Below, piece by piece: positions 6,709 through 56,004 of a DNA stretch of 64,000 bases; position 1 is the first letter of the stretch, and the number at the start of each line of letters is the position of its first letter. This DNA is from Lytechinus pictus (Eukaryota). The stretch lies in the NCBI RefSeq assembly GCF_037042905.1, contig NC_087245.1, positions 26,970,001 through 27,034,000 on the forward strand. Direction: 5' to 3'. Below the pieces are notes generated by a model. The model had not been told where the DNA came from, did not search any database, and saw only the letters and a program-made list of their open reading frames with translations. The position numbers and the translations under genes are program-made.

Positions 6709-6775
6709 ATGTTCACCATGAAAACTGTGGCGTTGAGTGTTGCCCTACTTCTGACTGCGGTCGTTTCAACTTCAG
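6709..6775 (+). CDS. Coding exon 1, signal peptide MFTMKTVALSVALLLTAVVSTS
   Basis: Acceptor TAG at 6671-6673, ATGs at 6709 and 6718, Lys followed by a hydrophobic core, donor CAG|GTATT, phase 1. Confidence 0.85.
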
Positions 6776-9700
6776 GTATTATATGATATTTATTATGAAT
6801 TAAGTATTTGCTGGGGTTTTTATGTAAGAATTTGCAATTTTGAATAATTAATTGGTTTATTTTATTTGAATATGAATGTATTCGTGCATCGAATTGTGTG
6901 GACGGCACACAAATGAGGGAGTAAGGTGCCTGTCACAAAAGTCATGAATGGTGGGTGCTCGTCACCCAGCATTGCCCAGCACGGAACCTTTGTTGAATTC
7001 ATCATTCAAGTGCCAACGCCTACGTATGCACGTTATTGTTGCTTTTTGCTAATTTGTTTTACCAGAAGAGGATTGGTAGCGTGTGCGTTAGTGCGTGGGT
7101 TGAAGAATGTGTGTGTGTGTGTTGTGTGCAAAGAGGATTGGTATGTGCATTCGTAAACGGGGTGAAGGTGTATTTATGTGAGGGTGTGCGTGTGCGCGCC
7201 TGAAAGAGAGGGGGGACACACACTCCACTGGCGTAAATCCGTGTTGATGGGTGGGGGGATGACTGAAATATTTTGGCATTTTTTTTGCAATCATGTTTTT
7301 AGATATGCAAGGAATTGTCATTACTATTTCCACAGTGGCGTACCGTGGGTCACGGCATGGGGGGGGGGGGCACCAGCAAAATGTTTGAATCACTGAGTGA
7401 GTGCGCGCGAAGCGCGCTCAGTTGCCAGTTATACTGACCTAATAGAGACATTTTAAAGACAATGTCATTAAACGGATATGTATCTCACCAATCAACTAAT
7501 GCGAGCGTGAAGCGCGAGCTGAATTTTTTTTATATTCACACCTAAAAAGGGACATTATAATCAAATTTGTGTAATCATGATAGGTACCTGTCTCGCTAAA
7601 CAATGCGAGCGCAAAGCGCGAGCTGAAAATTTAGATAATTCAGACCTGAAGTGGGGCATTCTAAGGTTTCTTTGTTGGAATTAACTAGGACCATACGTAT
7701 TTCATTAACCAAATGATGCGAGCGCGAAGCGCGAGCTGAATTTTTTTGATATTCAGAACAGAAGAAGGGACAATTTAAGGACTGATTTTAGGAATTCATG
7801 AAGAGCAGACATATCTCACCGATCCACTAATGCGAACGTAATCACGAACAGGAAATGTTTCATATATACGAAGACCTTAACATGGGGCAATCACTTTTTG
7901 AGTCATGAAAAAGAAGCATATGTCACTACATAAAACAATGATAACTATTCAATTTCAATTTAATTTAATATGTCTGCTCTTCATGAATTCCTAAAATCAG
8001 TCCTTAAACTGTCCCTTCTTCTGATCTGAATATCAAAAATTCAATTTTCAATTTCAATTCAATTTATTCAAATAACTCAAGTGCTGGGAAATATATTTGG
8101 TTTATATTGACTTGAAAACGGGATGTTTTAGTACAACAGGATTATATATCTCGTTAAACAGACAATGCGAGCACCAAGAACAATGAAGACATAGGCCCTG
8201 GGCAAATTATGTTTCATAAAGTTATGATAAAAATGTTTCTTATGTAATGTAACATAACATAATTATAATATAATATAACATTATAATGAATAATATTTTC
8301 TTCTTTCCCACTACGTTTCTCTTCCTTTCTCCCTCTTTTCTCCTTCCCCCCCTTTCCCCGTTTTTTTGTGTCAGCCGATGGGGGGGGGATGTGCCCCCCC
8401 ATGCCCCCCGTAGTTACATCACTGTATGTCCATACGGCGAATACCCCTCCAATATTTTTTACCCCATGATGGTTTAATGGTTTTATTAGAGATTACATTC
8501 AAAACAATTTTGACATTCCATCTTAATCCCTTCCCAAAGACCCCAACGGGGGTTTCTCTTCAATGCTATAAAGGACATAAGTATTTCGTTTGGAAATGGT
8601 GAACTGGCTCTTTATTTGCATTTTATGATTCAATAATATTGTTTTATTTGTTAAGCGGTATGTTAGGAAGAATTTTCACCAATAAAACAATTACCTCTTG
8701 TGATTTTTTTTAAATTTCTTTCGTAAAAAGTGGGGGGATGTTTGTACAGGCCATCCCCCCTCCTCGAAAAGTGGGGGGATATATCCCCCATCCCCCCCCC
8801 CGGGATTTACGCCAGTGACACACTCACACCCACGCACAGATAGAGAGGGGAGAGTGTGGGAGAGTAATAAAGAAAGTGAGAAGAGTCGGGGAAGAAAGGA
8901 AATTACCGATAGTATTTGCATTAGGAAAGACTTGCAAAATTGTAGAGAGAGGGGGGAAATAATAGTATATCAAGAAGATGAAATAAGGAGGAAAATTAGA
9001 TGGAGGAAGAAAATATAGAGTGGTGACGATGATATTGATAATGAAGACAAAAAGAAGAAGCAGAAAAAGGAGGAGGAGAAGAAAGATGAATAAGATGAAG
9101 TAGACAATCATTGAAAAATGCAGTTTGATGGATGATTAAATCTTCGCATCTCTTAATATTTATTTTTTACAGTCTCTGCAGGTGGCAGTTACAACGGTAA
9201 GGATTGACTTTAATTTGATATCATTTAAACTATCTTGAGAAATACACATGTTTTTGTCTTGCATTTATTTTTCTTTAATTTCGATGTTTAAACAAAATTA
9301 ACACATTCATTTTCCTCTAAAAAATCAACCTTAACAATTATAACATTATTCCATTCATTAATTCATCAATGCATTATATTATATTTTCCATTTCATAAAT
9401 TCTTTGTTACATATCTATTGTTTTTATTCATATCTACCAATTTATTGCGGGCGGGGTATTGCATCGTAAGTTATTATATTGCAGCCTATCATTATAATAT
9501 TTGTATTTATGTAAATCGCCTATATACATCAATGATATATCTCTTTGTCCCTTTCGCTGCTTGAATTTCTCGTTGGTCACGTGTTCAAATGGACCGGAAG
9601 CTGTATATTCTCAAACTACAAAGCGTTACAGAGGCAAAGCAGCTACATGGGGATAATGGGCATAACCCGTAACTTTTCAGGTAGTTATGGAGAGGAAAGA

Positions 9701-12700
9701 GTAACAAAAAGAAGAAGAAGAAATATAAACATAGAAGAAAGAAGAGTAACGAAACATAACATATTTAGGCCGTGTAGGTCTTTAATACTGCCATTGTTAT
9801 TCAGTTCGCCCCTCCTCTTTCGTTATACTCTGGCTAATCCCTGACAGTCGGGCATATATATTGCTGATGAAAAGATTAAAATATATTCTCCTTTAAAAAA
9901 AATATTTGTTTCCTTCTCTTCATTATCACTATGATTTACACAGTTGCAGATAATAATGATCGTTTCACACATAGCGGAGGATCAGGTGAGAAAAAGAAGA
10001 TAAAAATTTGTTCAACAAGATATTTGTCAGTATATTCAATATCTATATTAATAATAATAATAATAATGTACATTTATATAGCGCTTATTACATTAGTTTC
10101 TAAGCGCTTCATATTCACATATGAAAGTCTAGTTTACGTTATGGAATTTTATGTTTCTTTCAGTTTAAGTTACAACAGATTTTGAATTTTATTTACATGA
10201 GTCTACATTACACCTAGCCCTTATTTCTTAATACTACGCGTCTACTCCAGCTTCAGAAAATACTTCCTTCTTTAGCTTGAGCTGTGTACTTTACATTTTA
10301 CACAACAATAAATAAAGCCATCAAATTTGCACGTTAACAAATTAGGAACAGATGAATCCAAGATAAATATTTGGACAGAAAAAAGTCGTGAATTTTGTAA
10401 ATAACTGGTTTTAAAGTGTTCTGGTATCGATTCTGTCGATGCAATCTTTTTTTCATTAAGATGTATTAAAAATTGATATTAAGGAGGAAAGTAAAGTGAA
10501 ATCGACATTTTGAAATCATGCTTTCATTGTCAGGTCTTCAAGGCCTCAACATCCAGCAAAGTGGTTTCACGAAAGTGTCACATTCAACCAGTGAGAAGAC
10601 CATCACCACAGAAAATGGTAAATACGGAATTTATGAAATATATTATTATGAGCAGAATTAGAGAGAAAGAGGGGGGGGGGGCGGATCTGGTAAGATGGGA
10701 ACCGCCATCAACTCCCCTCTCCTAGATTCACCAGTTAGGCCTACTACTGCTGGTAAAAGTCCCTGTAAAAATGCTGCATATTTTTGTTAATATCAAGGAT
10801 GTAAGAATTTGTTTAATATGTAAGTGAAACAAACACGAATAACACTGATATAGACATGAAATTAATGGTAAATATCATTTGTATATCTAATCAATGAAAA
10901 GTGCCCATTTAAAAATGATGCACATCTGTTAGCTCGGAGACTCGTCTAAAAATCTGAAGAGTGTCAGTTTTGAATGGTTGTCTGTATTTCTATTTCCTAA
11001 AAAGAGAGTAACAAGGGTACAATGAAGAACCAGAGAGGGGATACAGAAACAACTCAAGAAAGGTCACGAAAAGGTAACGATTAATTTATTTGTTTTTTCA
11101 TTTTTTATTTAAAGTGTGATCATTATATTGAATATTATTGCAATACGTTCAAGTCATCTCTAACTCATAACCCAATTAAAAAAATGCATTACGCCTTTTT
11201 TGAAACTATCTTTCAAATAACAGATTGTTGATTCAAGAAGACTGGTTTTTCATTGCAACGAAAAAAAGGACTCTGTTAAGAATCACCAAGGGCCTCTTGC
11301 ATAAAAGAAAAACTCAATGTGTTAAATGTCAATAGTATAATGTTGTTTGCCAGAGTTTAAGGCTAAATTTTATGCAACAAGCCCCAGGAGTCTAACATTG
11401 TATAAAATATGGGATCACCAAGATGATATCCTTATAAAATTTGTCATTTGTCAAAACATTGTCTCATTTTATTATTTATTTTTTTTACCAGGGAAGAAAA
11501 ATAAACAAAATGAAGAAACGGAAGTCAAGCAACGGGGAGGAGATCGTCGCAAAAATGGAGACGATAATGGTATGAAAGATAGCTAAAAAAATTATTGATT
11601 TTTTTTAAATAATGACTGATTTATAACAATCGTCGGATGTCTCATGCTCACATTTTATCAGATTTTTTAAAATAAACTGAAGACAGATGACCTTACATGT
11701 TCCATGACGAATAAAACCAGGTTTTACATCTTAACCTTTTGATTTTAGTATATTGTCCTCTTTTATATAATACCAAAATATATATAGTTGATCATTACCT
11801 ATTCATAAACTGTTTTAAATTGAATTTTAATTAATTCTTATTATGGATTTAATACTAAAGTAATACACTGTATTTGTATCAAGGGTGGTCATCTTTACAA
11901 TAACATCCGGGGTTTTTATGACTGCCCAAAACCAATACTCTTTTTGTCTTGTATGTTGTTTATTATTACAATTGTAATATTATATTTTGAATTTTTAATT
12001 GCTCAATTTTAAAGGAGTTTTGACGCAATTGATGTATGTCTCATTGGAATTAAATGAATATTTAATTGAATTGGAGGGAAGTGGAAATATTTTATTTTTT
12101 CAAATAATCATTTTTTTCGCATTTTGATTAGCTATTATCTTTTGTGGTTGTATCTAGGAAGACGAAAAGGAGACAAGGGACACACTGAGACAGTGATTGA
12201 GAGAGTACGAGAAGGTGGTCGACGTAAAGATAAAGATCGAAGTGGTAAGACATTAAACTATGTTTATATATATTTATAATAAGGCATTTTGATTTTATGG
12301 TGTTCAGAGGGGGGGGGGGCGTTACCACCATAAAGGCCAGGCAAAATAGGGAAGATTCAATTGATTAAGTTCTGGAAAAGGAACAGAAGAAGAGCTTATT
12401 AAAGCAAAATTTTACAAATCAATTAGTGTCTATCATTCTTTTTATGAAAAATCAAAGTAATATTTGAAAGTAATACGAGCAGAAATAAGTAATTGAAACC
12501 GACTTAAGCTCTCGAACAAGTTTAGGTCATACTAATAGGACTTCATCAATGTTTCATTAGGTTCTAAAGGCGGCAGTTCGGAAGGCCAAAGGAACAGAGG
12601 AAATGGAGGTAAAGTTTTCTTATGATAACCAATGGGGTGCCCAATGTAATTTTTTTTTCAAAAGAATTTGTGAGCATGTCTTCACGTTTTTACATAAGTC

Positions 12701-13734
12701 CACCATTCACACATGCACTTTCTCATTTTGAGTTCCATTTCTCAATATAACACTCCCACCCCCTCGAACCAACATCTCTCTCCCTCTGCAAGCTCCCTTT
12801 CCATCACTTTCTGTTGAACTCCTGGTCTCGATTTTTCTTTCTATATTGAATGAATTTTTGTAAACATATATTTTTATTAAATACGCTAACACTTTTTGAG
12901 TATTAATTGGGGTGCCAGTCGTATAATACATAACAAATATGACCACCTTAAAAGAATCGACCCTTTTTTACTCTTAGCACAAGTATGAATTTTCCCAAAC
13001 ACGTTACCATTATATTCATTTATTCATGATATGACATGTACGTGTCTATTTTCCGTTCTTTGCCCCGTGGTCGATATCAATCTATTCTGTTGTCATTTCA
13101 AGGACGAAAAGCGGACAAGGGAAATGCTGAGACGGTGGTCGAGAGAGTACGGGGTGGTGGTCGATCTCAAAATAGAAACCGAAATGGTAAATACTTATAC
13201 AGTACATCAATAAATATTATAACTCAAGGTGGCCATATAACGTTGTGTCAAATACCGTGTGGGGAGGGGATAGAAAGGCATTTGAAGATGTAGAATGAAA
13301 TTAAGATTACACATATAATAGTTGATGATGATGGTGATGATGATGATGATGGTAATGGTGGAGGTGGTGGTGAACCTCGATTTTTGCATTTGTGAGAATC
13401 ATGTACTGTAAGTCTAGGCCTACTTATTTGTGGATTTGCCTTAAACTTTAAATCCTTTAATGTGTGTGTTGTATTTATATTGTTTATGTGGATTCAAAAT
13501 ATAATAAGCACAATCAAATTTGTACAGACACTTCAAAACATCTGTGACTGAAAAAAAAAATCCTCGCTTAATTTCTCTGCTGGGGAAAATATTTATAACA
13601 CAATAACTTTACGTAATAAAATTTAATTATTTATTTATTTATTCAGTTTTATTTCAACAGGGTAGCCCCATCAGTAATTTAAATACTGTTTTACATGGAG
13701 GCCCTGCATAACAAAAGAACACATTGAATTACAA

Positions 13735-13797
<63 letters not shown>

Positions 13798-40700: not shown

Positions 40701-42278
40701 TGAGGAAACTGAGGCACCAGCAACAGAGCCACCACCTGCAGAGACTGAGGCACCAGCAACAGAGCCACCACCTGCAGAGACTGAGGCACCAGCAACAGAG
40801 CCACCACCTGCAGAGACTGAGGCACCAGCAACAGAGCCACCACCTGCAGAGACTGAGGCACCAGCAACAGAGCCACCACCTGCAGAAACTGAGGCACCAG
40901 CAACAGAGCCACCACCTGCAGAAACTGAGGCACCAGCAACAGAGCCACCAGCTGAAGAAACTGATGCACCAGCAACAGAGCCACCAGCTGAAGAAACTGA
41001 GGCACCACCAACACAGCCACCAGCTGAAGAAACTGAGGCACCAGCAACAGAGCCACCACCTGCAGAGACTGAGGCATCACCAACACAGCCACCAGCTGGA
41101 GAAACTGAGGCACCAGAACCGGATGAAGGAACAAGGGGAGACAGTCCCGTGGTAGAATTACCAAGGAATCGGGGAAATAGAATCATACAAGAAGGTAATG
41201 ACCAATCAACACAAGGATCATCTTTGAAACCATCTCAAGTTCCCCCAGTCATCGAAACAATTCAAAACACTGGATCTACTGACGAATCAGGTATATTAAC
41301 TTCTTATACAACATATTGCTTTATAAGAATATCATTACGTGCATATGAAAATATTAAAAATCAGGGCATTTTCTGATTTTAAAAAATCCACTTTGTCAAA
41401 CCATATTCAATCTGAATTTCTGAATTATGTTTTTTAGGCTTAAAGATATTTCACATGGATGGAATTATCATTAAGTGCATGTGATAATACTAAAAAACTT
41501 AACATTTTTCTGGTTAAAAAAAATCACTTTGCCTATATTCATTGTGAATTGTTATGTTTTTTAGTCTTGAAGATATTTCACATGGATTGAGTTATGTTTC
41601 CATGATGAAAAGGATAATACATGAGTATTTTTATATTTTTGCCTCTTTCTAATTTTATTTACTACATATCCATAAAAGGTATCTTGTGTTCTGCAATGTC
41701 AGTTCTAGTACTAGTAGAGCTAGGAGCGGGAACAGTACAGTAGTAGTAGAAGAAGTAATAGAGTACTGAACTGTGACATCATCAATTTTCACTTTTTGCA
41801 TATCATCGTTTTTTATACCATATTTTCGTAGAGCATGATGAAAAACCCCTACAACCCAAATTTGGTAGGAATCGGTCCGTGGGGTCCCAAGATATGACCT
41901 CATGAATACATAATTATACCAATTGAAGTCAATGCATGATAGGCTTGGTTCCTAACATTTAGAACCAGGCCAATAATACACCGACTTCAATGGGACTAAT
42001 GTATTCACGAGGTTATATCTAAGGCCCCCATGGAACAATTCCCTCCAAAGTTTGGTAGTGGGGTCATCATGTTCTACCAAAATATAGTATCAAGATGCTG
42101 AAATGCTAAAAAAGTTTTTGTGACATCATCACTTTGGTACTCTATAGTAGTAGTAGTAGTAGTAGTAATAGTAGTAGTAGTAGTAGTAGCATATTAGTTG
42201 TACTACAAGTAGTAGTATTAGTAGTATTAGTAGTACTAGTGGTAGTAGTAGTAATAATAGTAGTAATAGTAGTAGTAA

Positions 42279-42337
<59 letters not shown>

Positions 42338-45300: not shown

Positions 45301-47789
45301 TGAGTCTGTGACATTGAAAATGCCTCTTTTCCCACTTTGATGCATGCTCACTCATCCATGAATAAACATATCGATTTCATTTTTGCACAGAATTCTGCCC
45401 ATAGGTTGATAAACATAACTGTCAAATGACATTGCTAACGACAGCCTTGAAAAAAAGTTCCACCATATTGAATAAGGGGTCACTTATTCTTAAACATATG
45501 AACCCAAAGTGTACACAATGTCTATGAGAGAGGAAGTCAAAATTTTAACAAAAATGAAATGAGGGTTTGTTTCATGGACGGATTTTGTTACTTCTGCCAA
45601 CAATTTTTTTCATGAAACTTCGCACATAGCTTTAGATTTACACTATCCAAAAGGCGCGCACACCAAAATAGTCATTCGATATGGCACAGAGTGGGGCCAA
45701 GGCCTTAAACTTTCTTCTCATTTGCATAATTTTCGAATATTATGTGCTCACTGAAGCATTAGACATCGGGATTTTCATAAAAATCAAATCAAATGAACTA
45801 TGCAAGGTTTGTGACAGACATCCATAGTTAGCAATTGCATTTTTTCCAATACCATAAAAAAGAGCTAATTGCATTCCACATGTTCATTCAAGCATGAATG
45901 TTTAATTAAACTTATTTGAATCATTGAAACATGTTAATTGGTCATGAACATAACAAAAAAAATTGAGAAAAGATCATTTCAGTTACCAAAATGAAACAAT
46001 ACTTGCCTATGATATTTGAAATTCGTATTTTTTGCTTTCATTAAATGTTCATTGGTTCGTGAAACAATGAATATTGTTGAAGATACTCTTCCCAAAAATA
46101 ATTGTCATCATATTCGATCATTTTTATCGATAGAAATGTGTAAAAAAATCAAATTATAGCAAATTTTAACTTGTGTTGATTCAACCGTGAAATTTAGCAA
46201 AAACATTGTATCGTATTTTAGAAAGTACCTTTTACAAGCCTTCTGACTATTTTTCATGAGAATGTGGAATTCGTTCTAATAAAGTGGAATCAAAATCATG
46301 ATATTTGGCTTGTGACTTTTGAAAAGTGACAATTTTGCCTTCTGGCGGTGCTCACTGAAGCATGACATAAAATACGTCCATAACATTTACTCAGAGGGTA
46401 GCTTATAAAATTACCTACACGCTCATGTAAAAATATATCGAAAACTCGCATTGGTTCGTAAATTATGGATGTTTGTTTAAGGGGGACTTACTTTTTTGTT
46501 GTGTATATCTTACTAAATTTGGACTACAGGTACCTGCAAACACTGATGGACTGATTGTGGGGTTTGTTTTTTCTTGGTCTTATTTTAAATAATTACTGAT
46601 TTAACAGGGATTAAATTGTTTATTTCATTTTATCGTTTCATGCTCTATGTCAGGCATAACTGAAGGAAATGAATTCATGGTTATGCGATGTAACACAGAA
46701 ACTAACCAATGCGATTCCCTCTACGCCGGACCAATTGAACAAATTGTAAGTGAACTTATATCAAATTAATTTCACCCAAATTAATGATGAATATCTGCCG
46801 TTTGTACTTTTCGTCAACTTTAGTTTACCTCCTGCCTTCCTAGCCTTTTCAGAGAGCCCTATATTTCTCCCTATTCTAAATTCATTTATTTTAATCTTTC
46901 CACTAATAGTTGTGCTTAGAGATTTTTGTTCTATTTCTGTATAGTGTATATCATATCAGGATTTTTGTGTTCAAATGTAATTTGATTCATGTTTCCTCCA
47001 CATTATCTTTGAAAATTGCATGTAGATAATTGAACTTGTTTCGACATGAGAATATACAGTTATCTATGACCTGACATTGATCATTTGTGGAGGCATATTT
47101 GCAACATTTTGATTTGAAAATCAGGAATTGAGGACAGCTGTGCAGGACATAGCGGCATGCAAATCAATTTATGAATATATGGAATTTAAATAATTTGAAT
47201 TAATTGATAATAAGCATATATCCATGTATGTATATATTACATGTCAGGTAATTTCTTAAGAAAAGGTATTGGGACTGTGAGTCATCCATGCCTAATATAT
47301 CATGGTTTTCTCCTGTCCCCCTGCCACACCATGAAGGGTTTATATATCCTTCTCAGGATATGCACTATTATTAAAGTTGCTTTCTTGATCTGTTCTTTTT
47401 AAGGGCGAGGTGCTAGGAGCATATATATTCACTCTGAAGATTCAGAAGACATTCGATGACAAGGATGACCATGACGGAGCATACTCCTACAAATTCACAT
47501 TGCTTTATGGAGGAGCTGTGGTCGGACAGGAGGTGGTGGTCGAGTATCCAGATACTTTCTATATCAGGTACATTGGATGCACTTCTGAAGGGTACTTGGC
47601 GACATGGAAGATCTTCTCAATTGTATCACCTGGTACGTTTCAGTTGGTCATGCTCACTTTATTTTGAAAAAAGGTAGTTAGAATTTGATGATATTGGCAA
47701 TGAGAGAGAAGCAGAAAGAGCCATTCCTACACAAGGGCACTGACTGCTGCTGATAAAGTTCCAGAGGAAAATCATTAATATGTGTAAAG

Positions 47790-47836
<47 letters not shown>

Positions 47837-50800
47837 TATGTGTGTGTGTGTTCGTGTATGGGTAGTGTGTGTGGGTAGGTGGGTGAGTGTGTGGGTGTGT
47901 GTATTTGGATGAGGTTGTATGTATTAGGGCAAGATTATGTGTGAATGCATGTGTGGGGGTGGGATGAGTGTGCATTATTATGCGTTAGAAAGAGAATACA
48001 TCAGATTAATCATCGTTAATGCAAGAAATTAACCCCACTGAGTACCGTAGATAATGTATTTCATATATGCGCTAAACGACAACCTGCAACTCGATGAAGT
48101 GATTGTTTAAAAGAGTATTTTACAATATTTCCGAATTTTGATGTTTGCAATTGTCAGAATGTTCCCAGTGGAGTAGATCATGTGCATTCATGAGTCACAT
48201 GACCTTCTTCCACATTTGATACAGGTACTACTCAGAGGTCGTCTTCAATCATTCTTCGGGATATTGATGATTCTTGCAGTCTGGAAGTGGATGTGTTTGA
48301 TCGCGAGCTGGTATTCAGTGTAGAAGCAGAAGAATTGCTCTACATTCATCTGTACACCAGCAACGGCATGTACATACTCCGTAAGTTGAATGTTGTCGAA
48401 TTCCTCTTTCACTTCCTCCTAATCTTCTCCTTCTTCCTCCTTCATCATCACATTTTTCCTTTTCCTTTTCTTCTTCTTCCTTCGCCAAAGATATGTTGTT
48501 TTGACTGAGACATTGTTGTATAGGCCTATACTTCCCATTGGCACTGATAAGTGGACCCCATAAATATGCAGCAAATTGTCTCTCATTTCCTTGGATTCTC
48601 CAAGCCCGTCACTAGCTTATTTCTTGAAGGAGAGACTTTTCTTAATGTTCAAGGAAGAAGAATTGTCAGAGGGAACAAAGTCTTACCAAGATGGGTTAGG
48701 TGCCCTCACCTTCCAATGGAAACACTCCAGAAGTAGGATACAGATTATCAGGGTACAACTTTATTTCTGTGATGACCGGCCAGATCCTTCATTTCAAAAA
48801 ACTTTTTTTTATTATCTAACTGATCTCTTTGATTTTTATCCAATTCAATTGATGAATAAGTTGCACATTCTATGAACTACTACATGGAAGACCAAATCTG
48901 GCAAAGTACTTTATTGTAGATTCTCAGTTCCCTGTGATTGTTTCTTTATATGTCATGGTACTGCATGGAACTCTTCACTCCTTTCCACGGTACCCCATGC
49001 TACTCTACATGTATGCTGCTTTCCATGGTACTTTCACAGTTTTCTATGATACTTTCAGAGTACTCCATGTTACTCTCACAGTTATCTATGCTCCCATAGA
49101 ACTCCATGGTACTTCATGGAACTCAGTACTACTTTCCATGGTACAACATGGTATTCCATGGTACTTTCACAGTTTTCTATGATACTTTCAGAGTACTCCA
49201 TGTTACTCTCACAGTTATCTATGCTCCCATAGAACTCCATGGTACTTCATGGAACTCAGTACTACTTTCCATGGTACAACATGGAATTCCATGGTACTTT
49301 CACAGTTTTCTATGATACTTTCAGAGTACTCCATGATACTCTCACAGTTATCTATGCTCCCATAGAACTCCATGGTACTTCATGGAACTCAATACTACTT
49401 TCCATGGTACCACATGGTATTCCACGGTACTTTCACAGCTTTCTATGATACTTTCATAGTACTCTAAGGTGTTTCCATGGTTCTCTCTCATACCCTAAAT
49501 GTTCTTTCTGAAACTACCCCAGGTGTTGGAGACAACAGCAACGAATACGTTACAGGATCCCTCGGTGAGGCAACGTCTCCTGGCGATGCCTCTCGTCGGG
49601 TTCAAGAAGGTGTGCTGAGTCTTTCAGGCAAGCAGTACTACCTATCCTGGAGAAACAGCAGGATTAAGTTTGGAGAATCAGCAGAGGACAGCGAAGCGAT
49701 GCTAGACTGGGTCATTGGGGAGGAGATCTCGGTGTCCAAGCTAGAGTTTGTTGCTAAGGTGGACAGCGTGTATCTTATTCACACCTACAAATACTTCTAT
49801 TTATATGGTTAGTAGAACTTAAATGATGTAATATAATTGTATTGATGACACCTGATAAGGTTGCTAGATTTGCGTTAATGTATTACTCTAACCTGTAATT
49901 TAACTGAAGTTTACATTTCAGCACCCGCATATTGTTTATTTAACGTTGGAAAAGAATTATGATTTATTTTTCATATAATGCTTAAGTTTATATAAAGTAA
50001 AATGGATGTCATCATTTTCTCTTGTTTCTCCTAACTATATGTATCAACATGTGTACCTCTTTATGTTTTGTGTGAAATACGAACGAAATAGCACAAAAAA
50101 CGATCCAGAAATAACTTTTTACTTTTGTGATATACTGTATATACAGTATGCTGGCAGGAATATAATGATAAATTCAATGCTTTTGAGTTTTGTCTCAAGC
50201 CTATTACATCTTTTTCTAAAACCTATAGCCAATGTTCTGCAATGGACCCATGACCGCATCCGAGCAACATCCCTTACTTTCTTCCGGCTTCGATATGAGC
50301 GAGGTGCACCATTCGTAGACCTCAAGATCAAAGCTTCAGGTACTGTCTTGATTGCACTTGCCACAGACCAGGCGCACCCAGAGTCAAGCATGAGTTTGAT
50401 ACGTAAGTTGACAGGAGATTACCGGAATTACCTTGGACTCTTTACTTAATATGATTGTGTTGAGTGATATATTTTGTTCTAAAATATTTCATTTGTATCA
50501 TTACCGATCATTGACTTGTATGTTGATAATTGAAGAGGAGGATCATGAATAAAATTATCGAAATCACATTGTCAGATGGCCATTTCAACGAAAAAAAAAT
50601 CATTCCTACGGCCTGTTTCACCGAGAACTTGCAATCATTTGAGCTTTGCCATTTAAGATAACTGACATGGCAAAAGAGCTCAGCAGCTGATCAAAGTCAA
50701 AGTTTCCACTGTAGATATACTGTCAAAGTTACGATAATTAGAAATCTTCACGAAGCAGACCCTAGGAATAATAACCTTTAGACAGAAAATATGTATGACT

Positions 50801-53661
50801 TTGCTATTAACCACAGTTTTCATATAATAGTATAACTACTTGGGAGAAAATGCTCTCAGTGGATGTTCATGAGTCTTACTTTTAAAAGTATGAAGATTTA
50901 AATGTCATTGTTATTTTCTTACCATTCTTTCTATTTTCCTCTCCAGATATGAGTTCCCGGAAGATATCTCTCTCGGAGTGCCTTGGTTGTGAAGCCATCT
51001 CCTCCGTCACCATCCGTGAAGACCAGCCAGCCCTCCTGGATCCGTCCTTGTTCCTGGAGTATCAGATAATATTTGAAGATGGCATTCTTAAGATCTTCTC
51101 CACCACCCAAGAAGCTGCATTATTTACCTACGATGGCATCCAGCAAGGCACACTCTTTTTCTATGATGGTTTCGGAGGAACGATCGGTAGCTACTACCAC
51201 ATCAGACTCAACCAGGGTGAGTCAAGATAAGAGACTTGGATTTAAAGTTTAAATAACAAATTTAAACAATGAAGAGTAAACCCTTCATGAATTTCATGAT
51301 AGATGGGTGTTTAATATAATAAACAACCAGTAATATTTCATTGACAAATTTGCTCTGGCCAATCAGATACAAGGAAGTTGATAGCTTAAAACAATAGTCA
51401 GTGAAAATGGTTCCACGACATTTGCTCCGGCGACGATCGCTCTGATGAAAAATCTGCATGTTAATCCAAGCCTAAAATCTAACCTAAAAAACTGAATAAA
51501 CCCTAATCCTTATCTTTGCATTATTCTGAACCAAAAACTCTATTTACATTTACTGGGATGTTAAGATAAGGGCAAATGTCGCAGGGGCACATGTCGTGTC
51601 ACCGTGAAAATTAGTGTTTCATGAAATGCTTCCAAAATAACTTGCATTGCAGTAATGGCGAAACAAAGTTTGAATCTGATTTCATACCATTGCACTAGGT
51701 TGTCAGGTTTACAGTTGATGTACTTACTAACATTGTAATACCATGTAGGATTACTATATAAAGTATGCAATAATGTTATGATCAATGTTTTTTTATCAGG
51801 AACTATTTACCGAGCAGAGCATTGTCATGATATAAGCACATACTTGGATGGGGGATTGAAGCTACTGAATATTCAACATTCTGATCAGATGATTGCTTTC
51901 TTTGATGAAGAGGTCAACCTGGAAGCAGAGCTTGGTAAGTGCAGTCAAATCTGTTGGTGGTCACCTGTCTATAGCAGCCACCTGCCTATAGTGACCACTA
52001 AAACGGATTCCCATGGAGAGGTAGATTGTGTGTATAAGAACCTGTCTCTAGCACCAACCTTCCTATAATGACCACTGAAGTTGAATCCCATGGAGGTAGA
52101 TTGTGTGTATAAGATTAAGTTTTGTGTTTCCCTTAAGTGGCCACTACAGACAGGATTTACTGCATATGAATCATACAAATTGTATTTTATCAGGTCAAAG
52201 ATTGTAGCTACTCACAATTCACAAGTGCCTTAATTTAAAGTCATGTACATGTATGTGCCCTTGATTTGGGGCTCACAAACACCTTGGGGCAACATTTGAG
52301 CAGTAAAAACATGATATGTACTCTAAAAATTCTTTATGATATTTGTAATTAGTGAAAACATATATTTTGATACATTCACATCTACACAAGATAAATGCAT
52401 TAATAGTGTACAGATAATGCATAGGTTTACATGTATTGTGTTAGAGGATATCTAGGATTCCTTGGTATTTGCCATGTTGTGCAAAAGCACCACTGTAAAT
52501 ATGGCAGAGCATGCTGCAGTGCCAGCAGCACATTCACACTTAGAATTATTGTATATCTGATATCTTGGGTAGATGTGAACAGACTGGTATATGTAATGGC
52601 AGTACAGTTGATAGAAATAAGAATGGACATACCATAATGCTGTGAAATCTTAAAAATATCAGTAAAAATGATTCAATGGCAAGATTCTTGAGACATGATC
52701 ATGATTCTCAATAAATCAAATATGTTTGCCTTTTGTAGGGAACAAAAGGAGCTACCTCCAAGTGCCTTTTCATAAATGAATTTTAAAAACTTCAAAATCA
52801 TGATTTAGAGCCAGCGGGCACATTTCCATAATCAATGTGCAATAGTTCTTGTCTACTGCTCATATGACCAATGAAGTGATGTGACATACATCACAGGCAA
52901 CTGGAAATTTGTATGCTCTTTCAAATCGCACTCACAGCATTGTGACCTATTCCCCTCCCTCCATCACATGATATACACTTTTAACATTATTAATGATGCA
53001 TAAGGCTGATAGAATTTCCAAAGGGTGGTTTTCATTTAATAACTATCTGCAAAAGTTAATCTTTCATTTTTGAATAATCACCCAACTCTAAGCATTAATT
53101 CAGACCAGAATATGCAAAAAAATGTGTAATAACACCTTGAAAGTCAAATTTCATCTAGTTGAAAAAATTATCTGGTCCAAAGAGACTCAACTTGGGCAGA
53201 GTTACCTGAAATTGTTATTGTCCATCGTCTATTCGTCTCTCCACTGCATTTTCATTTCAGCCATGGAAGACACAAGGACAGAGCTGCGTACCTCCCGCGG
53301 TGGCAACGCCATCGACATGACAACTAATCCCAGTTGCATCTACCATGACCCCTCCACTCTAGTCTGGCTCTCTTTCACCGATGGGGCTATTCAATATGGT
53401 ACCTACGACAAGGAGAATCACCAGAGAAGTGACCCGTGTATGACCTTTAACCTCCACGAGGGTCATAAGGTCAAGTACATCTCGTTTGGCCGACAGCGTC
53501 CAGAGTGGAGTTTGAGACATCACTCCATTGAGAGGAAGGTTGTCTACAAGCAGTTGATCACTCGTGTGAAGAGTTCTGTACTTGTAAAAGGCCCTCCCAT
53601 ACGTGTGAACGGCCCTCTCAAACGTGTGAACGGTCCTCCCGTTCGTGTAAATGGTCTTTAG
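6709..53661 (+). CDS. Large secreted multi-exon protein (~2,410 aa, 53 coding exons): signal peptide, G/R/K/S/E micro-exon modules, nine FAMeT-like domains, Pro/Glu/Thr/Ala mucin-like stalk, RGD motifs
   Basis: Manual join of the exons listed below. All have AG acceptors and GT donors (one GC), the frame is continuous, the lengths sum to 7236 nt and the join ends in TAG 53659-53661. All introns are phase 1 except 46746-47403 (phase 0). The stop-containing copy at 19158-19193 is excluded. Confidence 0.85.
7226..8817. mobile_element. Non-autonomous hAT-like DNA transposon (outer element)
   Basis: TIRs CACTGGCGTAAATCC / GGATTTACGCCAGTG; 8-bp TSD ACACACTC at 7218-7225 and 8818-8825. Confidence 0.85.
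7333..8424. mobile_element. Nested non-autonomous hAT-like element with internal GCGAGCGCGAAGCGCGAGC repeats
   Basis: Imperfect TIRs CAGTGGCGTACC / AGTTACATCACTG with poly-G/poly-C subterminal tracts; TSD TATTTCCA/TATGTCCA; ~110-bp internal repeats. Confidence 0.75.
9173..9196 (+). CDS. Micro-exon VSAGGSYN (end of signal peptide)
   Basis: tttttacAG acceptor, G|GTAAGG donor, 24 nt, phase 1-1. Confidence 0.75.
9944..9985 (+). CDS. Micro-exon VADNNDRFTHSGGS
   Basis: cAG acceptor, CAG|GTGAG donor, 42 nt, phase 1-1. Confidence 0.75.
10534..10617 (+). CDS. Exon GLQGLNIQQSGFTKVSHSTSEKTITTEN
   Basis: cAG acceptor, G|GTAAAT donor, 84 nt, open in phase 1-1. Confidence 0.75.
11005..11073 (+). CDS. 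Micro-exon ESNKGTMKNQRGDTETTQERSRK (contains RGD)
   Basis: Pyrimidine tract plus aAG, AAG|GTAACG donor, 69 nt. Confidence 0.7.
11492..11569 (+). CDS. Micro-exon GKKNKQNEETEVKQRGGDRRKNGDDN
   Basis: ttttaccAG acceptor, G|GTATG donor, 78 nt. Confidence 0.8.
12158..12244 (+). CDS. Micro-exon GRRKGDKGHTETVIERVREGGRRKDKDRS
   Basis: tAG acceptor, G|GTAAGA donor, 87 nt; paralog of 13103-13186. Confidence 0.8.
12561..12608 (+). CDS. Micro-exon GSKGGSSEGQRNRGNG
   Basis: tAG acceptor, GAG|GTAAAG donor, 48 nt; A-type module. Confidence 0.8.
13103..13186 (+). CDS. Micro-exon GRKADKGNAETVVERVRGGGRSQNRNRN
   Basis: aAG acceptor, G|GTAAAT donor, 84 nt. Confidence 0.8.
13735..13792. repeat. (TA)n microsatellite
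   Basis: Direct reading. Confidence 0.95.
14289..14444 (+). CDS. Domain 1 exon a (EWRTFTCRRGQRELVFEDLTENEKLEYEM...CLEI)
   Basis: cccAG acceptor, G|GTAAGA donor, 156 nt; clear paralog of 24741-24902. Confidence 0.85.
14919..15176 (+). CDS. Domain 1 exon b (VLSSSGESTMKFNGEDLCLPIGSFY...CYATSNGGGDSSLQIKELE)
   Basis: ttttacAG acceptor, T|GTAAGT donor, 258 nt; paralog of 25254-25523. Confidence 0.85.
15201..15664. repeat. Degenerate 11-bp tandem repeat (CACAGTGTGTT), probably a MITE interior
   Basis: Repeated cacagtgt(g/a)tt units; weak inverted ends TCCCTGTTG / CAGTAGGGA. Confidence 0.7.
16673..16732 (+). CDS. Micro-exon FSGTEISTFIGRYRGKGRGG
   Basis: aAG acceptor, G|GTAAGT donor, 60 nt; positional paralog of 25824-25889. 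Confidence 0.75.
17687..17767 (+). CDS. B-type micro-exon GRGQVEVGNTDASNGRGSGRRGKKGGK
   Basis: cAG acceptor, AAG|GTATA donor, 81 nt. Confidence 0.8.
18037..18081 (+). CDS. A-type micro-exon GSDESSESNENGGKG
   Basis: cAG acceptor, GAG|GTAAA donor, 45 nt. Confidence 0.8.
18478..18546 (+). CDS. B-type micro-exon GGQVGNADVAYGRQRGGRGKKGK
   Basis: cAG acceptor, AAG|GTAAT donor, 69 nt (6-nt in-frame deletion relative to sister copies). Confidence 0.75.
18770..18814 (+). CDS. A-type micro-exon DSSGSSESKENSGKG
   Basis: tAG acceptor, GAG|GTAAGG donor, 45 nt. Confidence 0.8.
19158..19193 (+). pseudogene. Degenerate A-type exon copy with in-frame stop (DSDSSYKKYGK*)
   Basis: Splice sites intact, 9 nt shorter than sister copies, GGA changed to TGA at 19190-19192. 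Confidence 0.7.
19359..19433 (+). CDS. B-type micro-exon GGQVEVGNAEAAYGRQRGGRGKKGK
   Basis: cAG acceptor, AAG|GTAAT donor, 75 nt. Confidence 0.8.
19704..19748 (+). CDS. A-type micro-exon DSSDSSESKEKKGKG
   Basis: tAG acceptor, GAG|GTAAGG donor, 45 nt. Confidence 0.8.
20192..20236 (+). CDS. A-type micro-exon DSDSSSGSRENNGKG
   Basis: cAG acceptor, GAA|GTAAGG donor, 45 nt. Confidence 0.75.
20407..20451 (+). CDS. 5'-truncated B-type micro-exon xAYGRQRGGRGKKGK with a deletion-created acceptor
   Basis: Original acceptor deleted; tttttgaaAG at 20405-20406 gives a 45-nt phase 1-1 exon. Confidence 0.45.
20566..20768 (+). mobile_element. tRNA-derived SINE, internally deleted
   Basis: Head GGAGCGTTGTGGCCCAGTGGATTAG (A box), (TAT)n/(TAG)n tail, TSD TAGTAGTG; empty site in the sister unit at ~19546-19553. 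Confidence 0.85.
20919..20963 (+). CDS. A-type micro-exon DSSGSSESKENSGKG with GC donor
   Basis: Same sequence as 18770-18814, but the donor is GAG|GCAAGG. Confidence 0.55.
21313..21915. mobile_element. Non-autonomous TTAA-targeting DNA transposon (Kolobok-like ends AGG...CCT)
   Basis: TTAA|AGGACAAGTCCACC ... GGTGGACTTGACCT|TTAA with long subterminal inverted repeats; empty site cgtaacTTAAtgcc at 22911-22924. Confidence 0.9.
22012..22056 (+). CDS. A-type micro-exon DSDSSSGSKENNGKG
   Basis: cAG acceptor, GAG|GTAAGT donor, 45 nt. Confidence 0.8.
22225..22299 (+). CDS. B-type micro-exon GGKVEVGNAEVDFGRQRGGRGKKGK
   Basis: cAG acceptor, AAG|GTAAT donor, 75 nt. Confidence 0.8.
23014..23058 (+). 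CDS. A-type micro-exon DSDSSSESKEKNGKG
   Basis: cAG acceptor, GAG|GTAAGG donor, 45 nt. Confidence 0.8.
23660..23704 (+). CDS. A-type micro-exon DSDSNSGSKENNGKG
   Basis: tAG acceptor, GAG|GTAAGT donor, 45 nt. Confidence 0.8.
23873..23947 (+). CDS. B-type micro-exon GGKVEVGNAEVDFGRQRGGRGKKGK
   Basis: Same sequence as 22225-22299; cAG acceptor and GT donor. Confidence 0.8.
24110..24157 (+). CDS. Micro-exon GSSESSSKSREKSGRR
   Basis: tAG acceptor, GAG|GTAAA donor, 48 nt; paralog of 29761-29808. Confidence 0.8.
24330..24530 (-). mobile_element. Degenerate CR1/L2-clade LINE reverse transcriptase fragment
   Basis: Minus strand reads FDKV*HMKLHGKVENYGITGLKHGWIIGFL and, after a frameshift, VPQGSALGSALFLIYVIDI (RT motif GVPQGSVLGP). 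Confidence 0.75.
24741..24902 (+). CDS. Domain 2 exon a (GWRTFQCRRGEREQVLRGLSENGDLEFEF...SIVI)
   Basis: aAG acceptor, G|GTAAGA donor, 162 nt. Confidence 0.85.
25254..25523 (+). CDS. Domain 2 exon b (VLSSSGESSIRLGGQDLCEPMLGSFY...CYATVNGGSDVTTSLNVKQIE)
   Basis: cAG acceptor, T|GTAAGT donor, 270 nt. Confidence 0.85.
25824..25889 (+). CDS. Micro-exon FSSDFLSEFVSRYGSRVRERVR
   Basis: cAG acceptor, GAG|GTAAAT donor, 66 nt. Confidence 0.75.
26409..26492 (+). CDS. Micro-exon GNLGRNVGDAEVEAERTRGRKRGKGNSK
   Basis: cAG acceptor, AAG|GTAGA donor, 84 nt. Confidence 0.8.
27372..27515. mobile_element. Small MITE inside the LINE
   Basis: TIRs CAGGGGCCGCGGAAC / GTTCCGCGGCCCCTG; 5-bp TSD TGGAG. Confidence 0.85.
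27650..28636. mobile_element. Non-autonomous Tc1/mariner-type element inside the LINE
   Basis: TA|CAGTGCGTATCAAAAAAAAGTTTACACTTTGAAAAA ... inverse|TA. Confidence 0.9.
29761..29808 (+). CDS. Micro-exon GSSGSSSESKDRSGKR
   Basis: ttctAG acceptor, GAG|GTACA donor, 48 nt. Confidence 0.8.
29907..30072. mobile_element. Palindromic MITE
   Basis: GCCCCGTTGC...GGTAACTTTGCCATCCAATGGTAACT mirrored; same family as 55415-55579. Confidence 0.75.
30708..30791 (+). CDS. Micro-exon GNRNRNGGDSEVENDSDGGRRRGNGRGR
   Basis: tAG acceptor, GAG|GTAAAT donor, 84 nt. Confidence 0.75.
31243..31329 (+). CDS. Micro-exon ESRRKEVGYTETASRRNRYKDRRQWGSRR
   Basis: cAG acceptor, GAG|GTGGG donor, 87 nt, open in phase 1-1. Confidence 0.65.
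31516..31677. other. Assembly gap (162 N)
   Basis: Direct reading. Confidence 1.
32022..32051 (+). CDS. Micro-exon GGSWRSRRGK
   Basis: cAG acceptor, T|GTAAGT donor, 30 nt. Confidence 0.7.
32075..33788. mobile_element. Non-autonomous Tc1/mariner-type element with ~300-bp TIRs
   Basis: TA|CAGTGCGTCTCAAAAAAAACTATACACTTTTGAAATGGCTGCC ... inverse|TA; 32075-32370 mirrors 33500-33788. Confidence 0.9.
34364..34630 (+). mobile_element. tRNA-derived SINE (same family as 20566)
   Basis: GGAGCATTGTGGACCAGTGG A box and GGTTCAAATCC B box. Confidence 0.8.
34704..34859 (+). CDS. Domain 3 exon a (FYRWRTLSGKERSHALHL...FDLEFCMAPNGKDCLTA)
   Basis: tAG acceptor, T|GTAAGT donor, 156 nt; shares WRT and FC...NGK.CL with domain 1a. 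Confidence 0.85.
35375..35632 (+). CDS. Domain 3 exon b (YMSTQDDSRAYVDYKG...IYMSTPDGKWTKVKIRLRR)
   Basis: tAG acceptor, A|GTATGT donor, 258 nt. Confidence 0.85.
36483..36641 (+). CDS. Domain 4 exon a (MGKKLTSSGG...FYFCFDRSNCYIA)
   Basis: tAG acceptor, G|GTAAGG donor, 159 nt. Confidence 0.8.
37248..37520 (+). CDS. Domain 4 exon b (DLSTQPTETSQITYQG...ASTDDGDFTELQMIEIE)
   Basis: tAG acceptor, AAG|GTATC donor, 273 nt. Confidence 0.85.
37904..38056 (+). CDS. Domain 5 exon a (ASREISSETSLERTTV...LILSRSDGSSYTI)
   Basis: Long pyrimidine tract plus cAG, A|GTAAAT donor, 153 nt. Confidence 0.8.
39046..39321 (+). CDS. Domain 5 exon b (KMSTKPTDSSVIITG...IRTEGGGIQDFSEEEVE)
   Basis: gcAG acceptor, AAG|GTAGG donor, 276 nt. 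Confidence 0.85.
40028..41290 (+). CDS. Large exon: ~30 x EPPPAETEAPAT mucin-like repeat, then EPDEGTRGDSPVVELPRNRG...STDES
   Basis: catAG acceptor at 40027, CAG|GTATA donor at 41290, 1263 nt, phase 1-1; same frame as ORF 41149-41376. Confidence 0.9.
40030..41115 (+). repeat. Coding 36-bp minisatellite, ~30 copies
   Basis: Unit GAGCCACCACCTGCAGAGACTGAGGCACCAGCAACA with few variants. Confidence 0.95.
41759..42146. mobile_element. MITE, with a related fragment at ~17035-17270
   Basis: Inverted ends ATAGAGTAC...TGACATCA / TGACATCA...GTACTCTAT; internal blocks shared with 17035-17270. Confidence 0.6.
42144..42360. repeat. (TAG)n microsatellite
   Basis: Direct reading. Confidence 0.95.
42598..42636 (+). 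CDS. Micro-exon DVKETVVPEVAEP
   Basis: gcAG acceptor, CTG|GTAAGT donor, 39 nt. Confidence 0.8.
43233..43259 (+). CDS. Micro-exon AVKPFNEEP
   Basis: tAG acceptor, CTG|GTAAGT donor, 27 nt; ends like the previous exon (GAGCCTG|GTAAGT). Confidence 0.75.
43723..43912. mobile_element. Palindromic MITE
   Basis: TTTCATAAAGCTGTTCGTAAGTTAAGAGTGAC mirrored by GTCACTCTTAACTTACAAACAGCTTTATGAAA. Confidence 0.75.
44028..44201 (+). CDS. Domain 6 exon a (DESGIIQTQPSG...FDFSVTIPKGFSILLT...YYSI)
   Basis: tAG acceptor, G|GTGAGA donor, 174 nt. Confidence 0.85.
44593..46503. mobile_element. Non-autonomous TA-flanked DNA transposon
   Basis: TA|CACAACAAAAAAAGTAAGTCCCCC ... GGGGGACTTACTTTTTTGTTGTG|TA; no transposase ORF. 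Confidence 0.85.
46654..46745 (+). CDS. Domain 6 exon b1 (GITEGNEFMVMRCNTETNQCDSLYAGPIEQI)
   Basis: cAG acceptor, ATT|GTAAGT donor, 92 nt, phase 1-0. Confidence 0.8.
47404..47632 (+). CDS. Domain 6 exon b2 (GEVLGAYIFTLKI...IRYIGCTSEGYLATWKIFSIVSP)
   Basis: aAG acceptor, CTG|GTACGT donor, 229 nt, phase 0-1; FAMeT-like C-terminal motif YIGxxxxGxxxxWKI. Confidence 0.85.
47791..47975. repeat. (TA)n followed by a TG-rich simple repeat
   Basis: Direct reading. Confidence 0.9.
48225..48380 (+). CDS. Domain 7 exon a (GTTQRSSSIILRD...LVFSVEAEELLYIHLYTSNGMYIL)
   Basis: cAG acceptor, C|GTAAGT donor, 156 nt. Confidence 0.8.
48950..49480. repeat. 133-bp intronic tandem repeat, ~3.5 copies, built from CCATGGTAC subunits
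   Basis: Unit starts at 49021, 49154, 49287 and 49420. Confidence 0.9.
49523..49807 (+). CDS. Domain 7 exon b (RVGDNSNEYV...VLSLSGKQYYLSWRNSRIKFGES...MLDW...YFYLY)
   Basis: ccAG acceptor, G|GTTAGT donor, 285 nt; resembles the FAMeT core (ILS....R.FWISW..G.I.VG.....FL.W). Confidence 0.85.
50229..50402 (+). CDS. Domain 8 exon a (ANVLQWTHD...VDLKIKASGTVLIALATDQ...SLI)
   Basis: tAG acceptor, C|GTAAGT donor, 174 nt; resembles the FAMeT F.VKA..DAHIAL motif. Confidence 0.85.
50947..51216 (+). CDS. Domain 8 exon b (HMSSRKISLSEC...LLDPSLFLEYQIIFEDGILKI...YYHIRLNQ)
   Basis: ccAG acceptor, G|GTGAGT donor, 270 nt. Confidence 0.85.
51800..51934 (+). CDS. Domain 9 exon a (GTIYRAEHCHD...NLEAEL)
   Basis: cAG acceptor, G|GTAAGT donor, 135 nt. 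Confidence 0.8.
53261..53661 (+). CDS. Terminal exon: domain 9 part b (VWLSFTDGAIQYG...VKYISFG...W) plus GPPxRVN tail and stop
   Basis: tttcAG acceptor at 53260, TAG at 53659-53661; FAMeT-like motifs. Confidence 0.85.
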
Positions 53662-55859: not shown

Positions 55860-56004
55860 AGCTTTTATATTGTGCCATTTCATAATTCATAAACAAGCAA
55901 CCAGTGGACCGACGGCTTGAAGGCCTCTCAGAGGGACCTGGTAATGAGAATCTAAATGCCTTACCAAAGGGCACTAGCTCTTCTGACTGAGCTATCGCGC
56001 CTCC
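55860..56004 (-). mobile_element. Deleted tRNA-derived SINE fragment
   Basis: Minus strand begins GGAGGCGCGATAGCTCAGTC (A box), followed by GTGCCCTTTGGTAAGGCATTTA. Confidence 0.55.

Follow-up and report, generated by a model that had tools for sequence, protein, structure and literature searches.

LOC129260138 of Lytechinus pictus, an annotated, uncharacterised sea urchin gene for a very large secreted protein with tandem D domains and phase-1 micro-exons

Introduction

FAMeT domains (Pfam family Methyltransf_FA, PF12248) are reported from footprint proteins of sea stars (PMC9382459) and from CPAMD8 (PMC9358689). The abalone protein UP5 ('Uncharacterized protein 5') is a secreted methyltransf_FA shell protein (PMC6003135), and the FAMeT proteins of arthropods are small and carry either two copies of PF12248 or PF12248 together with DUF3421 (PMC10015273). 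Here we analyse LOC129260138, a gene of the sea urchin Lytechinus pictus whose product of up to 2381 residues comprises nine tandem D domains, two of which match PF12248. It lies in a stretch of 64,000 nucleotides (nt) of contig NC_087245.1 (assembly GCF_037042905.1, positions 26,970,001 to 27,034,000, forward strand), called the window in the following, to which all coordinates refer. The window is AT-rich eukaryotic DNA with a GC content of about 0.33 and one assembly gap (N) at 31516-31677. A first reading of this DNA, made from its letters and referred to as the sequence-only reading, had proposed a hidden gene for a giant modular secreted protein and had correctly named the footprint proteins and CPAMD8 as background.

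Gene structure and annotation

We are highly confident that the window contains one real protein-coding gene for a single secreted protein. On the + strand, the gene opens with an ATG at 6709 and closes 47 kb downstream with a TAG at 53659-53661, the stop codon having been checked. Span, strand, start and stop, as first proposed, are borne out by a spliced product identical to RefSeq isoforms X1 and X2 of LOC129260138, and the supposed echinoderm origin agrees with the RefSeq entry, which assigns the product to Lytechinus pictus. Contrary to the first claim, the gene is no hidden one: nine isoforms of it stand in RefSeq, and Lytechinus variegatus and Strongylocentrotus purpuratus have annotated orthologs. 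It is thus already in public annotation, and finding it adds nothing. The statement that the architecture lacks a named counterpart is upheld, as every source gives only 'uncharacterized protein', and no mention of LOC129260138 or of its orthologs LOC121431742 and LOC576141 was found in a literature search.

Prior to the annotation look-up, a crude splice-aware dynamic-programming gene finder of our own, trained on a few long stop-free stretches, was run on the window. It delivered a + strand chain of about 54 exons between 6.9 and 56 kb, in which nearly all internal exons were phase-1 symmetric, together with a false start and spurious exons at 10726-10752, 13322-13369, 32296-32335, 32624-32659 and 55898-55990, while exons 11005-11073 and 37904-38056 were not recovered. 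With the single exon 37250-37519 as query, a library of representative proteins at 50% identity yielded a protein of 2366 residues (P0001), which an exact look-up identified as RefSeq XP_063955385.1, 'uncharacterized protein LOC129260138 isoform X2', of L. pictus. Matches to Phytophthora and bacterial repeat proteins in the first library search were rejected as spurious, with unrelated Pfam domains.

Isoform X2 was mapped codon by codon onto the window, with canonical splice sites required; every part of it maps at 100% identity, giving 50 coding exons. Isoform X1 (P0016, 2381 residues) equals X2 plus exon 23660-23704, which makes 51 exons and 7146 nt, and its translation matches exactly. The 53 exons counted at first are two more than in this longest public isoform. 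All introns are GT-AG and 49 of the 50 are in phase 1, the sole exception being the phase-0 intron between 46745 and 47404, inside domain D6. Purines make up 70.6% of the micro-exons compared to 50% of the introns; with the GT-AG introns, this is what had been noticed as purine-rich islands with AG and GT bounds that join into one frame. The nine RefSeq isoforms, X1-X9, have 2301-2381 residues and differ by exon skipping in the cassette array only. Comparison of these isoforms gives the following skipped exons:

19359-19433, 19704-19748, 22012-22056, 22225-22299, 23014-23058, 23660-23704 and 24110-24157, + strand: skipped cassette exons

The D domains

The exon chain encodes, in the order that had been read from the DNA, a signal peptide, basic modules, D1, a module array, D2, further modules, D3-D5, a stalk with RGDSP, D6-D9 and a tail. 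The D domains are 138-165 residues long, and eight of the nine are encoded by exon pairs:

14289-14444 and 14919-15176, + strand: D1, exon pair, X1 residues 195-332
24741-24902 and 25254-25523, + strand: D2, exon pair, X1 residues 599-742
34704-34859 and 35375-35632, + strand: D3, exon pair
36483-36641 and 37248-37520, + strand: D4, exon pair, the domain that was modelled
37904-38056 and 39046-39321, + strand: D5, exon pair
44028-44201, 46654-46745 and 47404-47632, + strand: D6, three exons, with the only phase-0 intron
48225-48380 and 49523-49807, + strand: D7, exon pair
50229-50402 and 50947-51216, + strand: D8, exon pair, best Pfam Methyltransf_FA match
51800-51934 and 53261-53661, + strand: D9 with the basic tail and the TAG, PF12248 match

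D3-D5 comprise X1 residues 876-1300 and D6-D9 X1 residues 1744-2345. D1-D5 are mutually homologous and align well, with BLAST E-values from 5e-42 (D1 and D2, 50% identity) to about 1e-3, and their internal intron falls into the identical alignment column in all five. Consequently, the exon pair of D1-D5 was duplicated as a unit.

If the whole isoform X2 is searched against Pfam, a single family is found, Methyltransf_FA, for which D8 and D9 together give 38.2 bits (E 1.5e-09, cut-off 24.2), and the two orthologs score 34.0 and 39.1 bits. The D8 match aligns X2 residues 2068-2174 with positions 20-125 of the PF12248 profile. Scanned singly, D8 reaches 20.0 bits and D9 16.4 bits, both below the cut-off of 24.2, while D1-D7 gave no Pfam match above noise at E-values up to 10. 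By sequence, the term FAMeT-like therefore applies to D8 and D9 and not to D1-D7. A profile of D1-D5 compared with profiles of D6, D7, D8 and D9 gave an hhalign probability below 1% in each case, and sequence searches of the Protein Data Bank, including one with the D1-D5 profile, returned nothing significant. Judged by these comparisons, D1-D5 form a sequence family of their own.

An AlphaFold2 model of D4, built on a 13-sequence alignment of D1-D5, is confident (mean predicted local distance difference test score, pLDDT, 81.6; predicted template modelling score, pTM, 0.82) and all beta, with ten strands. Among solved structures it resembles galectins, legume lectins, LNS domains and CBM66; the N-domains of galectin-8 and galectin-9 come out highest, with a template modelling (TM) score of 0.65. 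The Swiss-Prot part of the AlphaFold database returned galectins, collagen N-terminal domains, abalone UP5 and the N-terminus of Arabidopsis At2g30600, with a TM score of 0.60 to each of the latter two. Among the top 30 AlphaFold database clusters, five carried names of the FAMeT family (TM 0.49-0.63), while galectins, DUF1080 and other ConA-like folds match the D4 model as well as FAMeT does, all of these being predictions. The model thus suggests that D1-D5 are ConA/galectin-like sandwiches; this is compatible with a distant FAMeT kinship and does not single out that family. The link of D4 to FAMeT runs solely through its predicted fold.

For D6 and D7, the model was built from three sequences and has a mean pLDDT of 52.8. 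A broad structural search matched the D7 part of this model to galectins at Z 10.9 over 120-132 residues, and the D6 part to sandwiches of the GH43 C-terminal, thrombospondin C-terminal and legume-lectin-like kinds at Z 9-9.7. A language-model atlas search with D6 led to ConA-like families as well, below the recognition threshold. We take this as a hint of a lectin-like fold in D6 and D7, and any link of these two domains to FAMeT, made through a low-confidence model, is tentative.

The intron ahead of the second D7 exon harbors a 133-nt tandem repeat at 49021-49464 (3.3 copies, 97% match), which gives long stop-free non-coding frames.

Signal peptide, charged spacers and cassette array

After the signal peptide, symmetric phase-1 micro-exons on either side of D1 and D2 encode three strongly basic, disordered-looking spacer stretches rich in Gly, Arg, Lys and Ser:

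6709-6775, + strand: exon 1 (67 nt), start codon and signal peptide, 22 residues and one base of the next codon, matching X2 residues 1-22
9173-9196, 9944-9985, 10534-10617 and 11005-11073, + strand: exons 2-5, N-terminal basic Gly/Arg/Asn/Lys modules, mapped exactly, phase 1-1
11492-11569, 12158-12244, 12561-12608 and 13103-13186, + strand: exons 6-9, further modules of the same kind, mapped exactly, phase 1-1
16673-16732, 17687-17767, 18037-18081, 18478-18546 and 18770-18814, + strand: spacer/cassette array, part 1, mapped exactly
19359-19433, 19704-19748, 20192-20236, 22012-22056 and 22225-22299, + strand: spacer/cassette array, part 2, mapped exactly
23014-23058, 23660-23704 (not in X2), 23873-23947 and 24110-24157, + strand: spacer/cassette array, part 3, mapped exactly
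25824-25889, 26409-26492, 29761-29808, 30708-30791, 31243-31329 and 32022-32051, + strand: third basic module set, mapped exactly

Exon 1 is followed by a GT donor at 6776 in phase 1. In a 19-residue hydropathy scan the signal peptide, a typical one, peaks at 2.04 while all other stretches stay at or below 1.26, and the scan predicts no transmembrane segment in the whole protein. A signal peptide in exon 1 without any second hydrophobic stretch is what had been claimed.

The N-terminal basic modules comprise X1 residues 23-194 with an isoelectric point (pI) of 10.5, and hold a first RGD tripeptide at 11034-11042 that has no counterpart in S. purpuratus. The spacer/cassette array (X1 residues 333-598, pI 10.0) consists of 26% Gly, 17% Ser and 13% Lys, while the third set (X1 residues 743-875) reaches a pI of 11.6 with 23% Arg. 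A polyprotein cut by proprotein convertases at such basic linkers was considered and rejected, since the orthologs have no more than one or two R-x-K/R-R sites each.

Between 17.6 and 24.2 kb, the exons of the array together with their flanks form families of direct repeats, with purine-rich, AG/GT-flanked cores of 45 nt and of 69-81 nt. Within the array a unit of 1.65 kb, introns included, is duplicated at about 92% identity, and this similarity indicates that the array expanded recently.

Several sequences near these exons resemble them or give open frames. A 45-nt cassette look-alike at 20919-20963 has a GC instead of a GT donor, and at 20407-20451 a truncated copy of a 75-nt cassette is found. 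At 13322-13369 our own gene finder had placed a phase-1 poly-Asp/Gly exon candidate. None of the three is used by any RefSeq isoform. Directly after the second D1 exon, the intron contains a tandem repeat of 11/22/77 nt at 15180-15600, which gives rise to a spurious open frame at 14774-15607.

Stalk, RGD motif and overall properties

The center of the protein is encoded by one large exon, followed by two micro-exons:

40028-41290, + strand: single exon of 1263 nt, acidic Pro/Glu/Ala/Thr stalk and the sequence after it, X1 residues 1301-1721 (421 residues)
41134-41148, + strand: RGDSP motif just after the stalk repeats in the same exon, X1 residues 1670-1674
42598-42636 and 43233-43259, + strand: linker micro-exons, mapped exactly, X1 residues 1722-1743

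The stalk is a tandem repeat at 40031-41116 with a 36-nt unit, that is 12 residues, in about 30 copies at 93% match, and it is composed of 28% Pro, 24% Glu, 21% Ala and 15% Thr. The RGDSP that had been reported together with an acidic stalk is indeed present. Its RGD (41134-41142), in a region predicted to be outside the domains, recurs after the central repeat of L. variegatus and of S. purpuratus, in the latter species though the stalk repeat itself is replaced.

For isoform X1 we calculate a mass of 259 kDa and pI 4.9; it has 23 cysteines and two N-glycosylation sequons. It also contains 34 Ser-x-Glu motifs, and Ser/Asp/Glu runs are found in cassette exons. The basic tail (X1 residues 2346-2381) carries three short Gly-Pro-rich repeats.

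The stalk exon is followed by an intron with a (TAG)n microsatellite at 42145-42358, in which the unit occurs about 72 times.

The assembly gap

One intron within the third basic module set contains the unread letters of the window:

31516-31677, no strand: assembly gap (N), within the 692-nt intron between exon 31 (31243-31329) and exon 32 (32022-32051)

Since both flanking exons, 31 and 32, are phase 1 at entry and exit, the reading frame is independent of the letters in the gap. The L. variegatus ortholog is colinear here, with no inserted residues at the joins of exons 31 and 32 and of exons 32 and 33. A second L. pictus record (P0017) has no indel at the gap join, as far as the positions of differences tell, which were compared in place of the letters. 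RNA-like runs of the same organism as the window contained 0.21 and 0.15 of the 31-mers sampled from 30690-31345, where 0.18 would be expected from exons 30 and 31 alone; for 35260-39330, the same runs contained 0.22-0.23, and the calculated exon-only share is about 0.24. A search with residues 790-925 against transcript-derived protein fragments spanning exons 29-34 gave no match. In principle, the gap might harbor a cassette exon that is skipped by all these models.

Orthologs and variation

Orthologs are LOC121431742 of L. variegatus (P0018, 2380 residues) and LOC576141 of S. purpuratus (P0019, 2503 residues), next to an older partial entry (P0002). All orthologs found are from sea urchins; as the searches depended on shared words and on length, a lack of hits in other organisms is no evidence. 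The L. variegatus ortholog aligns with X1 from end to end (2144 identical of 2398 columns, about 90%). A comparison of the two Lytechinus species gives 92-98% identity for the D domains, 77% for the cassette array and 87% for the stalk, the latter two with gaps. For P0018, residues of about 540-560 match the translated L. pictus intron at about 19604-19703, just upstream of a 45-nt cassette exon, which suggests either an upstream alternative acceptor or an error in the L. variegatus model.

In the S. purpuratus ortholog, signal peptide and N-terminal modules are retained, and so are D3-D5, which are 49-61% identical to those of L. pictus, and D6-D9, with 60-68%. Residues 188-971 comprise four near-identical copies of a D1-type domain with spacers; a cassette array of the Lytechinus type is missing, and a quite different acid/basic repeat of 50 residues takes the place of the Pro/Thr stalk. 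The D1-type copies are either a very recent tandem expansion or an artifact of assembly or annotation. Within L. pictus, P0017 (2155 residues) is shorter by 148 residues in the array and by 60 in the stalk, the latter corresponding to five repeats, and shows 44 substitutions; these differences may be allelic or assembly copy-number variation, or variation in splicing.

Most likely, the gene grew as phase-1 exon units were duplicated in tandem. Which units multiplied differs between the lineages: micro-exon cassettes in Lytechinus, entire D1 units in Strongylocentrotus.

Sequence downstream of the gene

Downstream of the gene, an open frame at 58515-58739 matches the homeodomain-like family HTH_23 with 24.6 bits, at the cut-off, and is probably the remnant of a DNA transposon. 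Tandem repeats follow at 59342-60148 (163-192 nt) and 63694-64000 (114 nt).

Discussion

The most likely role of the LOC129260138 product is that of a secreted extracellular matrix or cell-adhesion scaffold, to which we give somewhat less than an even chance. In such a scaffold, the lectin-like sandwiches would offer many weak, multivalent sites for glycans or other matrix components, and the stalk would serve as an extended, probably O-glycosylated spacer between the two halves of the protein, next to an RGD as putative integrin contact. The polyampholyte micro-exon modules, alternately basic and rich in Ser/Asp/Glu, might contribute electrostatic cohesion, and exon skipping would set the length of the spacers.

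Several points weigh against this role. The domains typical of matrix proteins, such as EGF, vWD, FN3 and discoidin, are absent from the Pfam result, which gives only Methyltransf_FA, and in a matrix protein of this size more than 23 cysteines and two N-glycosylation sequons would be expected. An RGD tripeptide arises readily by chance, and the N-terminal one at 11034-11042 lacks conservation. The folds of D6 and D7 come from the model with a mean pLDDT of 52.8, and a lectin-like fold does not show sugar binding. As for the gene itself, the public models are automatic predictions and errors may be common to all of them.

Among the alternatives, a component of the temporary adhesive of the tube foot, released from disc gland cells and using its charged spacers to bind the surface or drive cohesion, is an unlikely candidate that we keep by analogy with sea stars. 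Six of their footprint proteins, Sfp1, 3, 4a, 5, 7 and 8, contain FAMeT domains (PMC9382459), and the protein studied here is likewise secreted, has disordered charged regions and matches PF12248 in D8 and D9. However, none of the partner domains of the footprint proteins (vWD, C8, TIL, EGF, discoidin, galactose lectin, hyalin repeat, WAP) was found by Pfam, and the AC1-specific footprint proteins are rich in cysteine, as opposed to 23 in 2381 residues here. In the main text and eight supplements of a Paracentrotus tube-foot study, a search for words rather than for sequence found neither 'farnesoic' nor PF12248 nor the gene number of S. purpuratus.

Less probable again is a humoral protein of immune recognition or agglutination, in which nine lectin-like domains would engage microbial surfaces while cassette exons provide a variety of isoforms. 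An oyster haemocyte Methyltransf_FA protein with microbe-binding activity appears by title among the references of PMC9358689, the D4, D6 and D7 models resemble galectins or other lectin folds, and nine isoforms are annotated. Yet what varies is low-complexity spacer, while the putative binding domains are the most conserved parts of the protein, and there is neither a Pfam galectin match nor evidence of a sugar-binding site.

A biomineralization protein of the skeletal or tooth matrix, whose Ser/Asp/Glu-rich and basic modules would contact mineral in analogy to the Methyltransf_FA shell proteins of molluscs, we consider quite improbable. Abalone UP5 carries the domain (PMC6003135) and matches the D4 model structurally. 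The 34 Ser-x-Glu motifs and the Ser/Asp/Glu runs of the cassette exons would fit such a role as well. On the other hand, we found nothing that connects the protein with a skeletal proteome of sea urchins. Spicule matrix proteins of urchins are typically C-type lectin proteins, which we also count against the skeletal role. The tube-foot, immune and skeletal proposals all draw on analogy to other proteins with FAMeT domains.

Automatic annotation might have fused at least two neighboring genes, for example one for the N-terminal D1-D5 and one for the C-terminal D6-D9. The two sets of domains are unrelated by sequence, and the models of all three species come from the same annotation pipeline. 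However, the single signal peptide stands at the start and none follows later, the chain of phase-1 exons with canonical sites is unbroken over the whole span, and order and ends are shared by three species despite the replaced central repeat. In addition, exons of both tested parts occur in the same RNA-like runs. A chimera is thus very improbable. The chance of an enzyme that methylates farnesoic acid is negligible, as only the name of the Pfam family speaks for it, while the arthropod protein was never reliably shown to methylate farnesoic acid and may be no enzyme (PMC10015273), and the present protein is secreted with a predicted fold of a lectin-like beta sandwich and not of a methyltransferase.

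Returning to the matrix or cell-adhesion scaffold, one might go further. D1-D5 are possibly an undescribed domain family, as they go unmatched in Pfam and the model of D4 is ConA/galectin-like. The protein might then found an echinoid-specific class of matrix or adhesive scaffolds, in which combinatorially spliced phase-1 micro-exons tune length and charge of the spacers and lineage-specific expansion of units adapts the material. This extended proposal we regard as unlikely.

Independent of its role, the protein is conserved, secreted, uncharacterised and of very large size, and L. pictus is a sea urchin amenable to genetic work. The gene is unusual in the number of its tandem domains and in its very regular phase-1 micro-exon architecture. 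It shows very cleanly how a gene grows when phase-1 exon units are duplicated, and annotated isoforms skip cassette micro-exons of this kind. Knowledge of the tissue and the partners of the protein could help to explain what FAMeT-like domains do in echinoderm adhesives, mollusc shells and CPAMD8.

Comparison with known systems

The stalk resembles those of the mucin type, rich in Pro, Thr and Ser, in being encoded by a large exon with about 30 near-identical 12-residue Pro/Thr/Glu/Ala repeats whose copy number varies within the species. Unlike mucin-type stalks, it is strongly acidic with 24% Glu, contains little Ser and lacks mucin end domains; its O-glycosylation is putative. Galectins share the predicted fold of D4 (TM 0.65) at a sequence identity of 7-14%, and no D domain has a galectin Pfam match at E-values up to 10.

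Arthropod FAMeT proteins likewise contain PF12248 in tandem, whereas alternative splicing varies the number of domains there (PMC10015273) and the spacers here; the present protein also differs by its 2381 residues, its signal peptide and the lack of a DUF3421 match. CPAMD8, abalone UP5 and the oyster haemocyte protein MFCP have in common with it a FAMeT domain in a secreted protein without enzymatic context (PMC9358689, PMC6003135). However, each of them has one domain, within a macroglobulin frame in CPAMD8 and alone in UP5, and all three are without micro-exon spacers or stalk. The domains of CPAMD8 and alpha-2-macroglobulin (macroglobulin, bait-region, thioester and receptor-binding) gave no Pfam match in our protein.

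The sea star proteins Sfp1, 3, 4a, 5, 7 and 8 are, like the protein described here, secreted echinoderm proteins with Methyltransf_FA domains and in part with disordered regions (PMC9382459). In them, one or two FAMeT domains stand next to partners of the vWD/C8/TIL, EGF, lectin, hyalin or WAP kinds (PMC9382459). In contrast, our protein has none of these partners, few cysteines and nine tandem sandwiches, and of the families that mark Sfp1-like proteins, vWD, C8 and TIL with EGF, discoidin or galactose-lectin, none gave a Pfam match at E-values up to 1.

The closest counterparts are the orthologs of L. variegatus and S. purpuratus, which share the signal peptide, the order of the D domains, the RGD after the central repeat and the four C-terminal domains. 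The gene in the window is the same as LOC129260138, its spliced exons being identical to X1 and X2, and its product is an annotated, uncharacterised member of the extracellular proteins with FAMeT/ConA-like domains.

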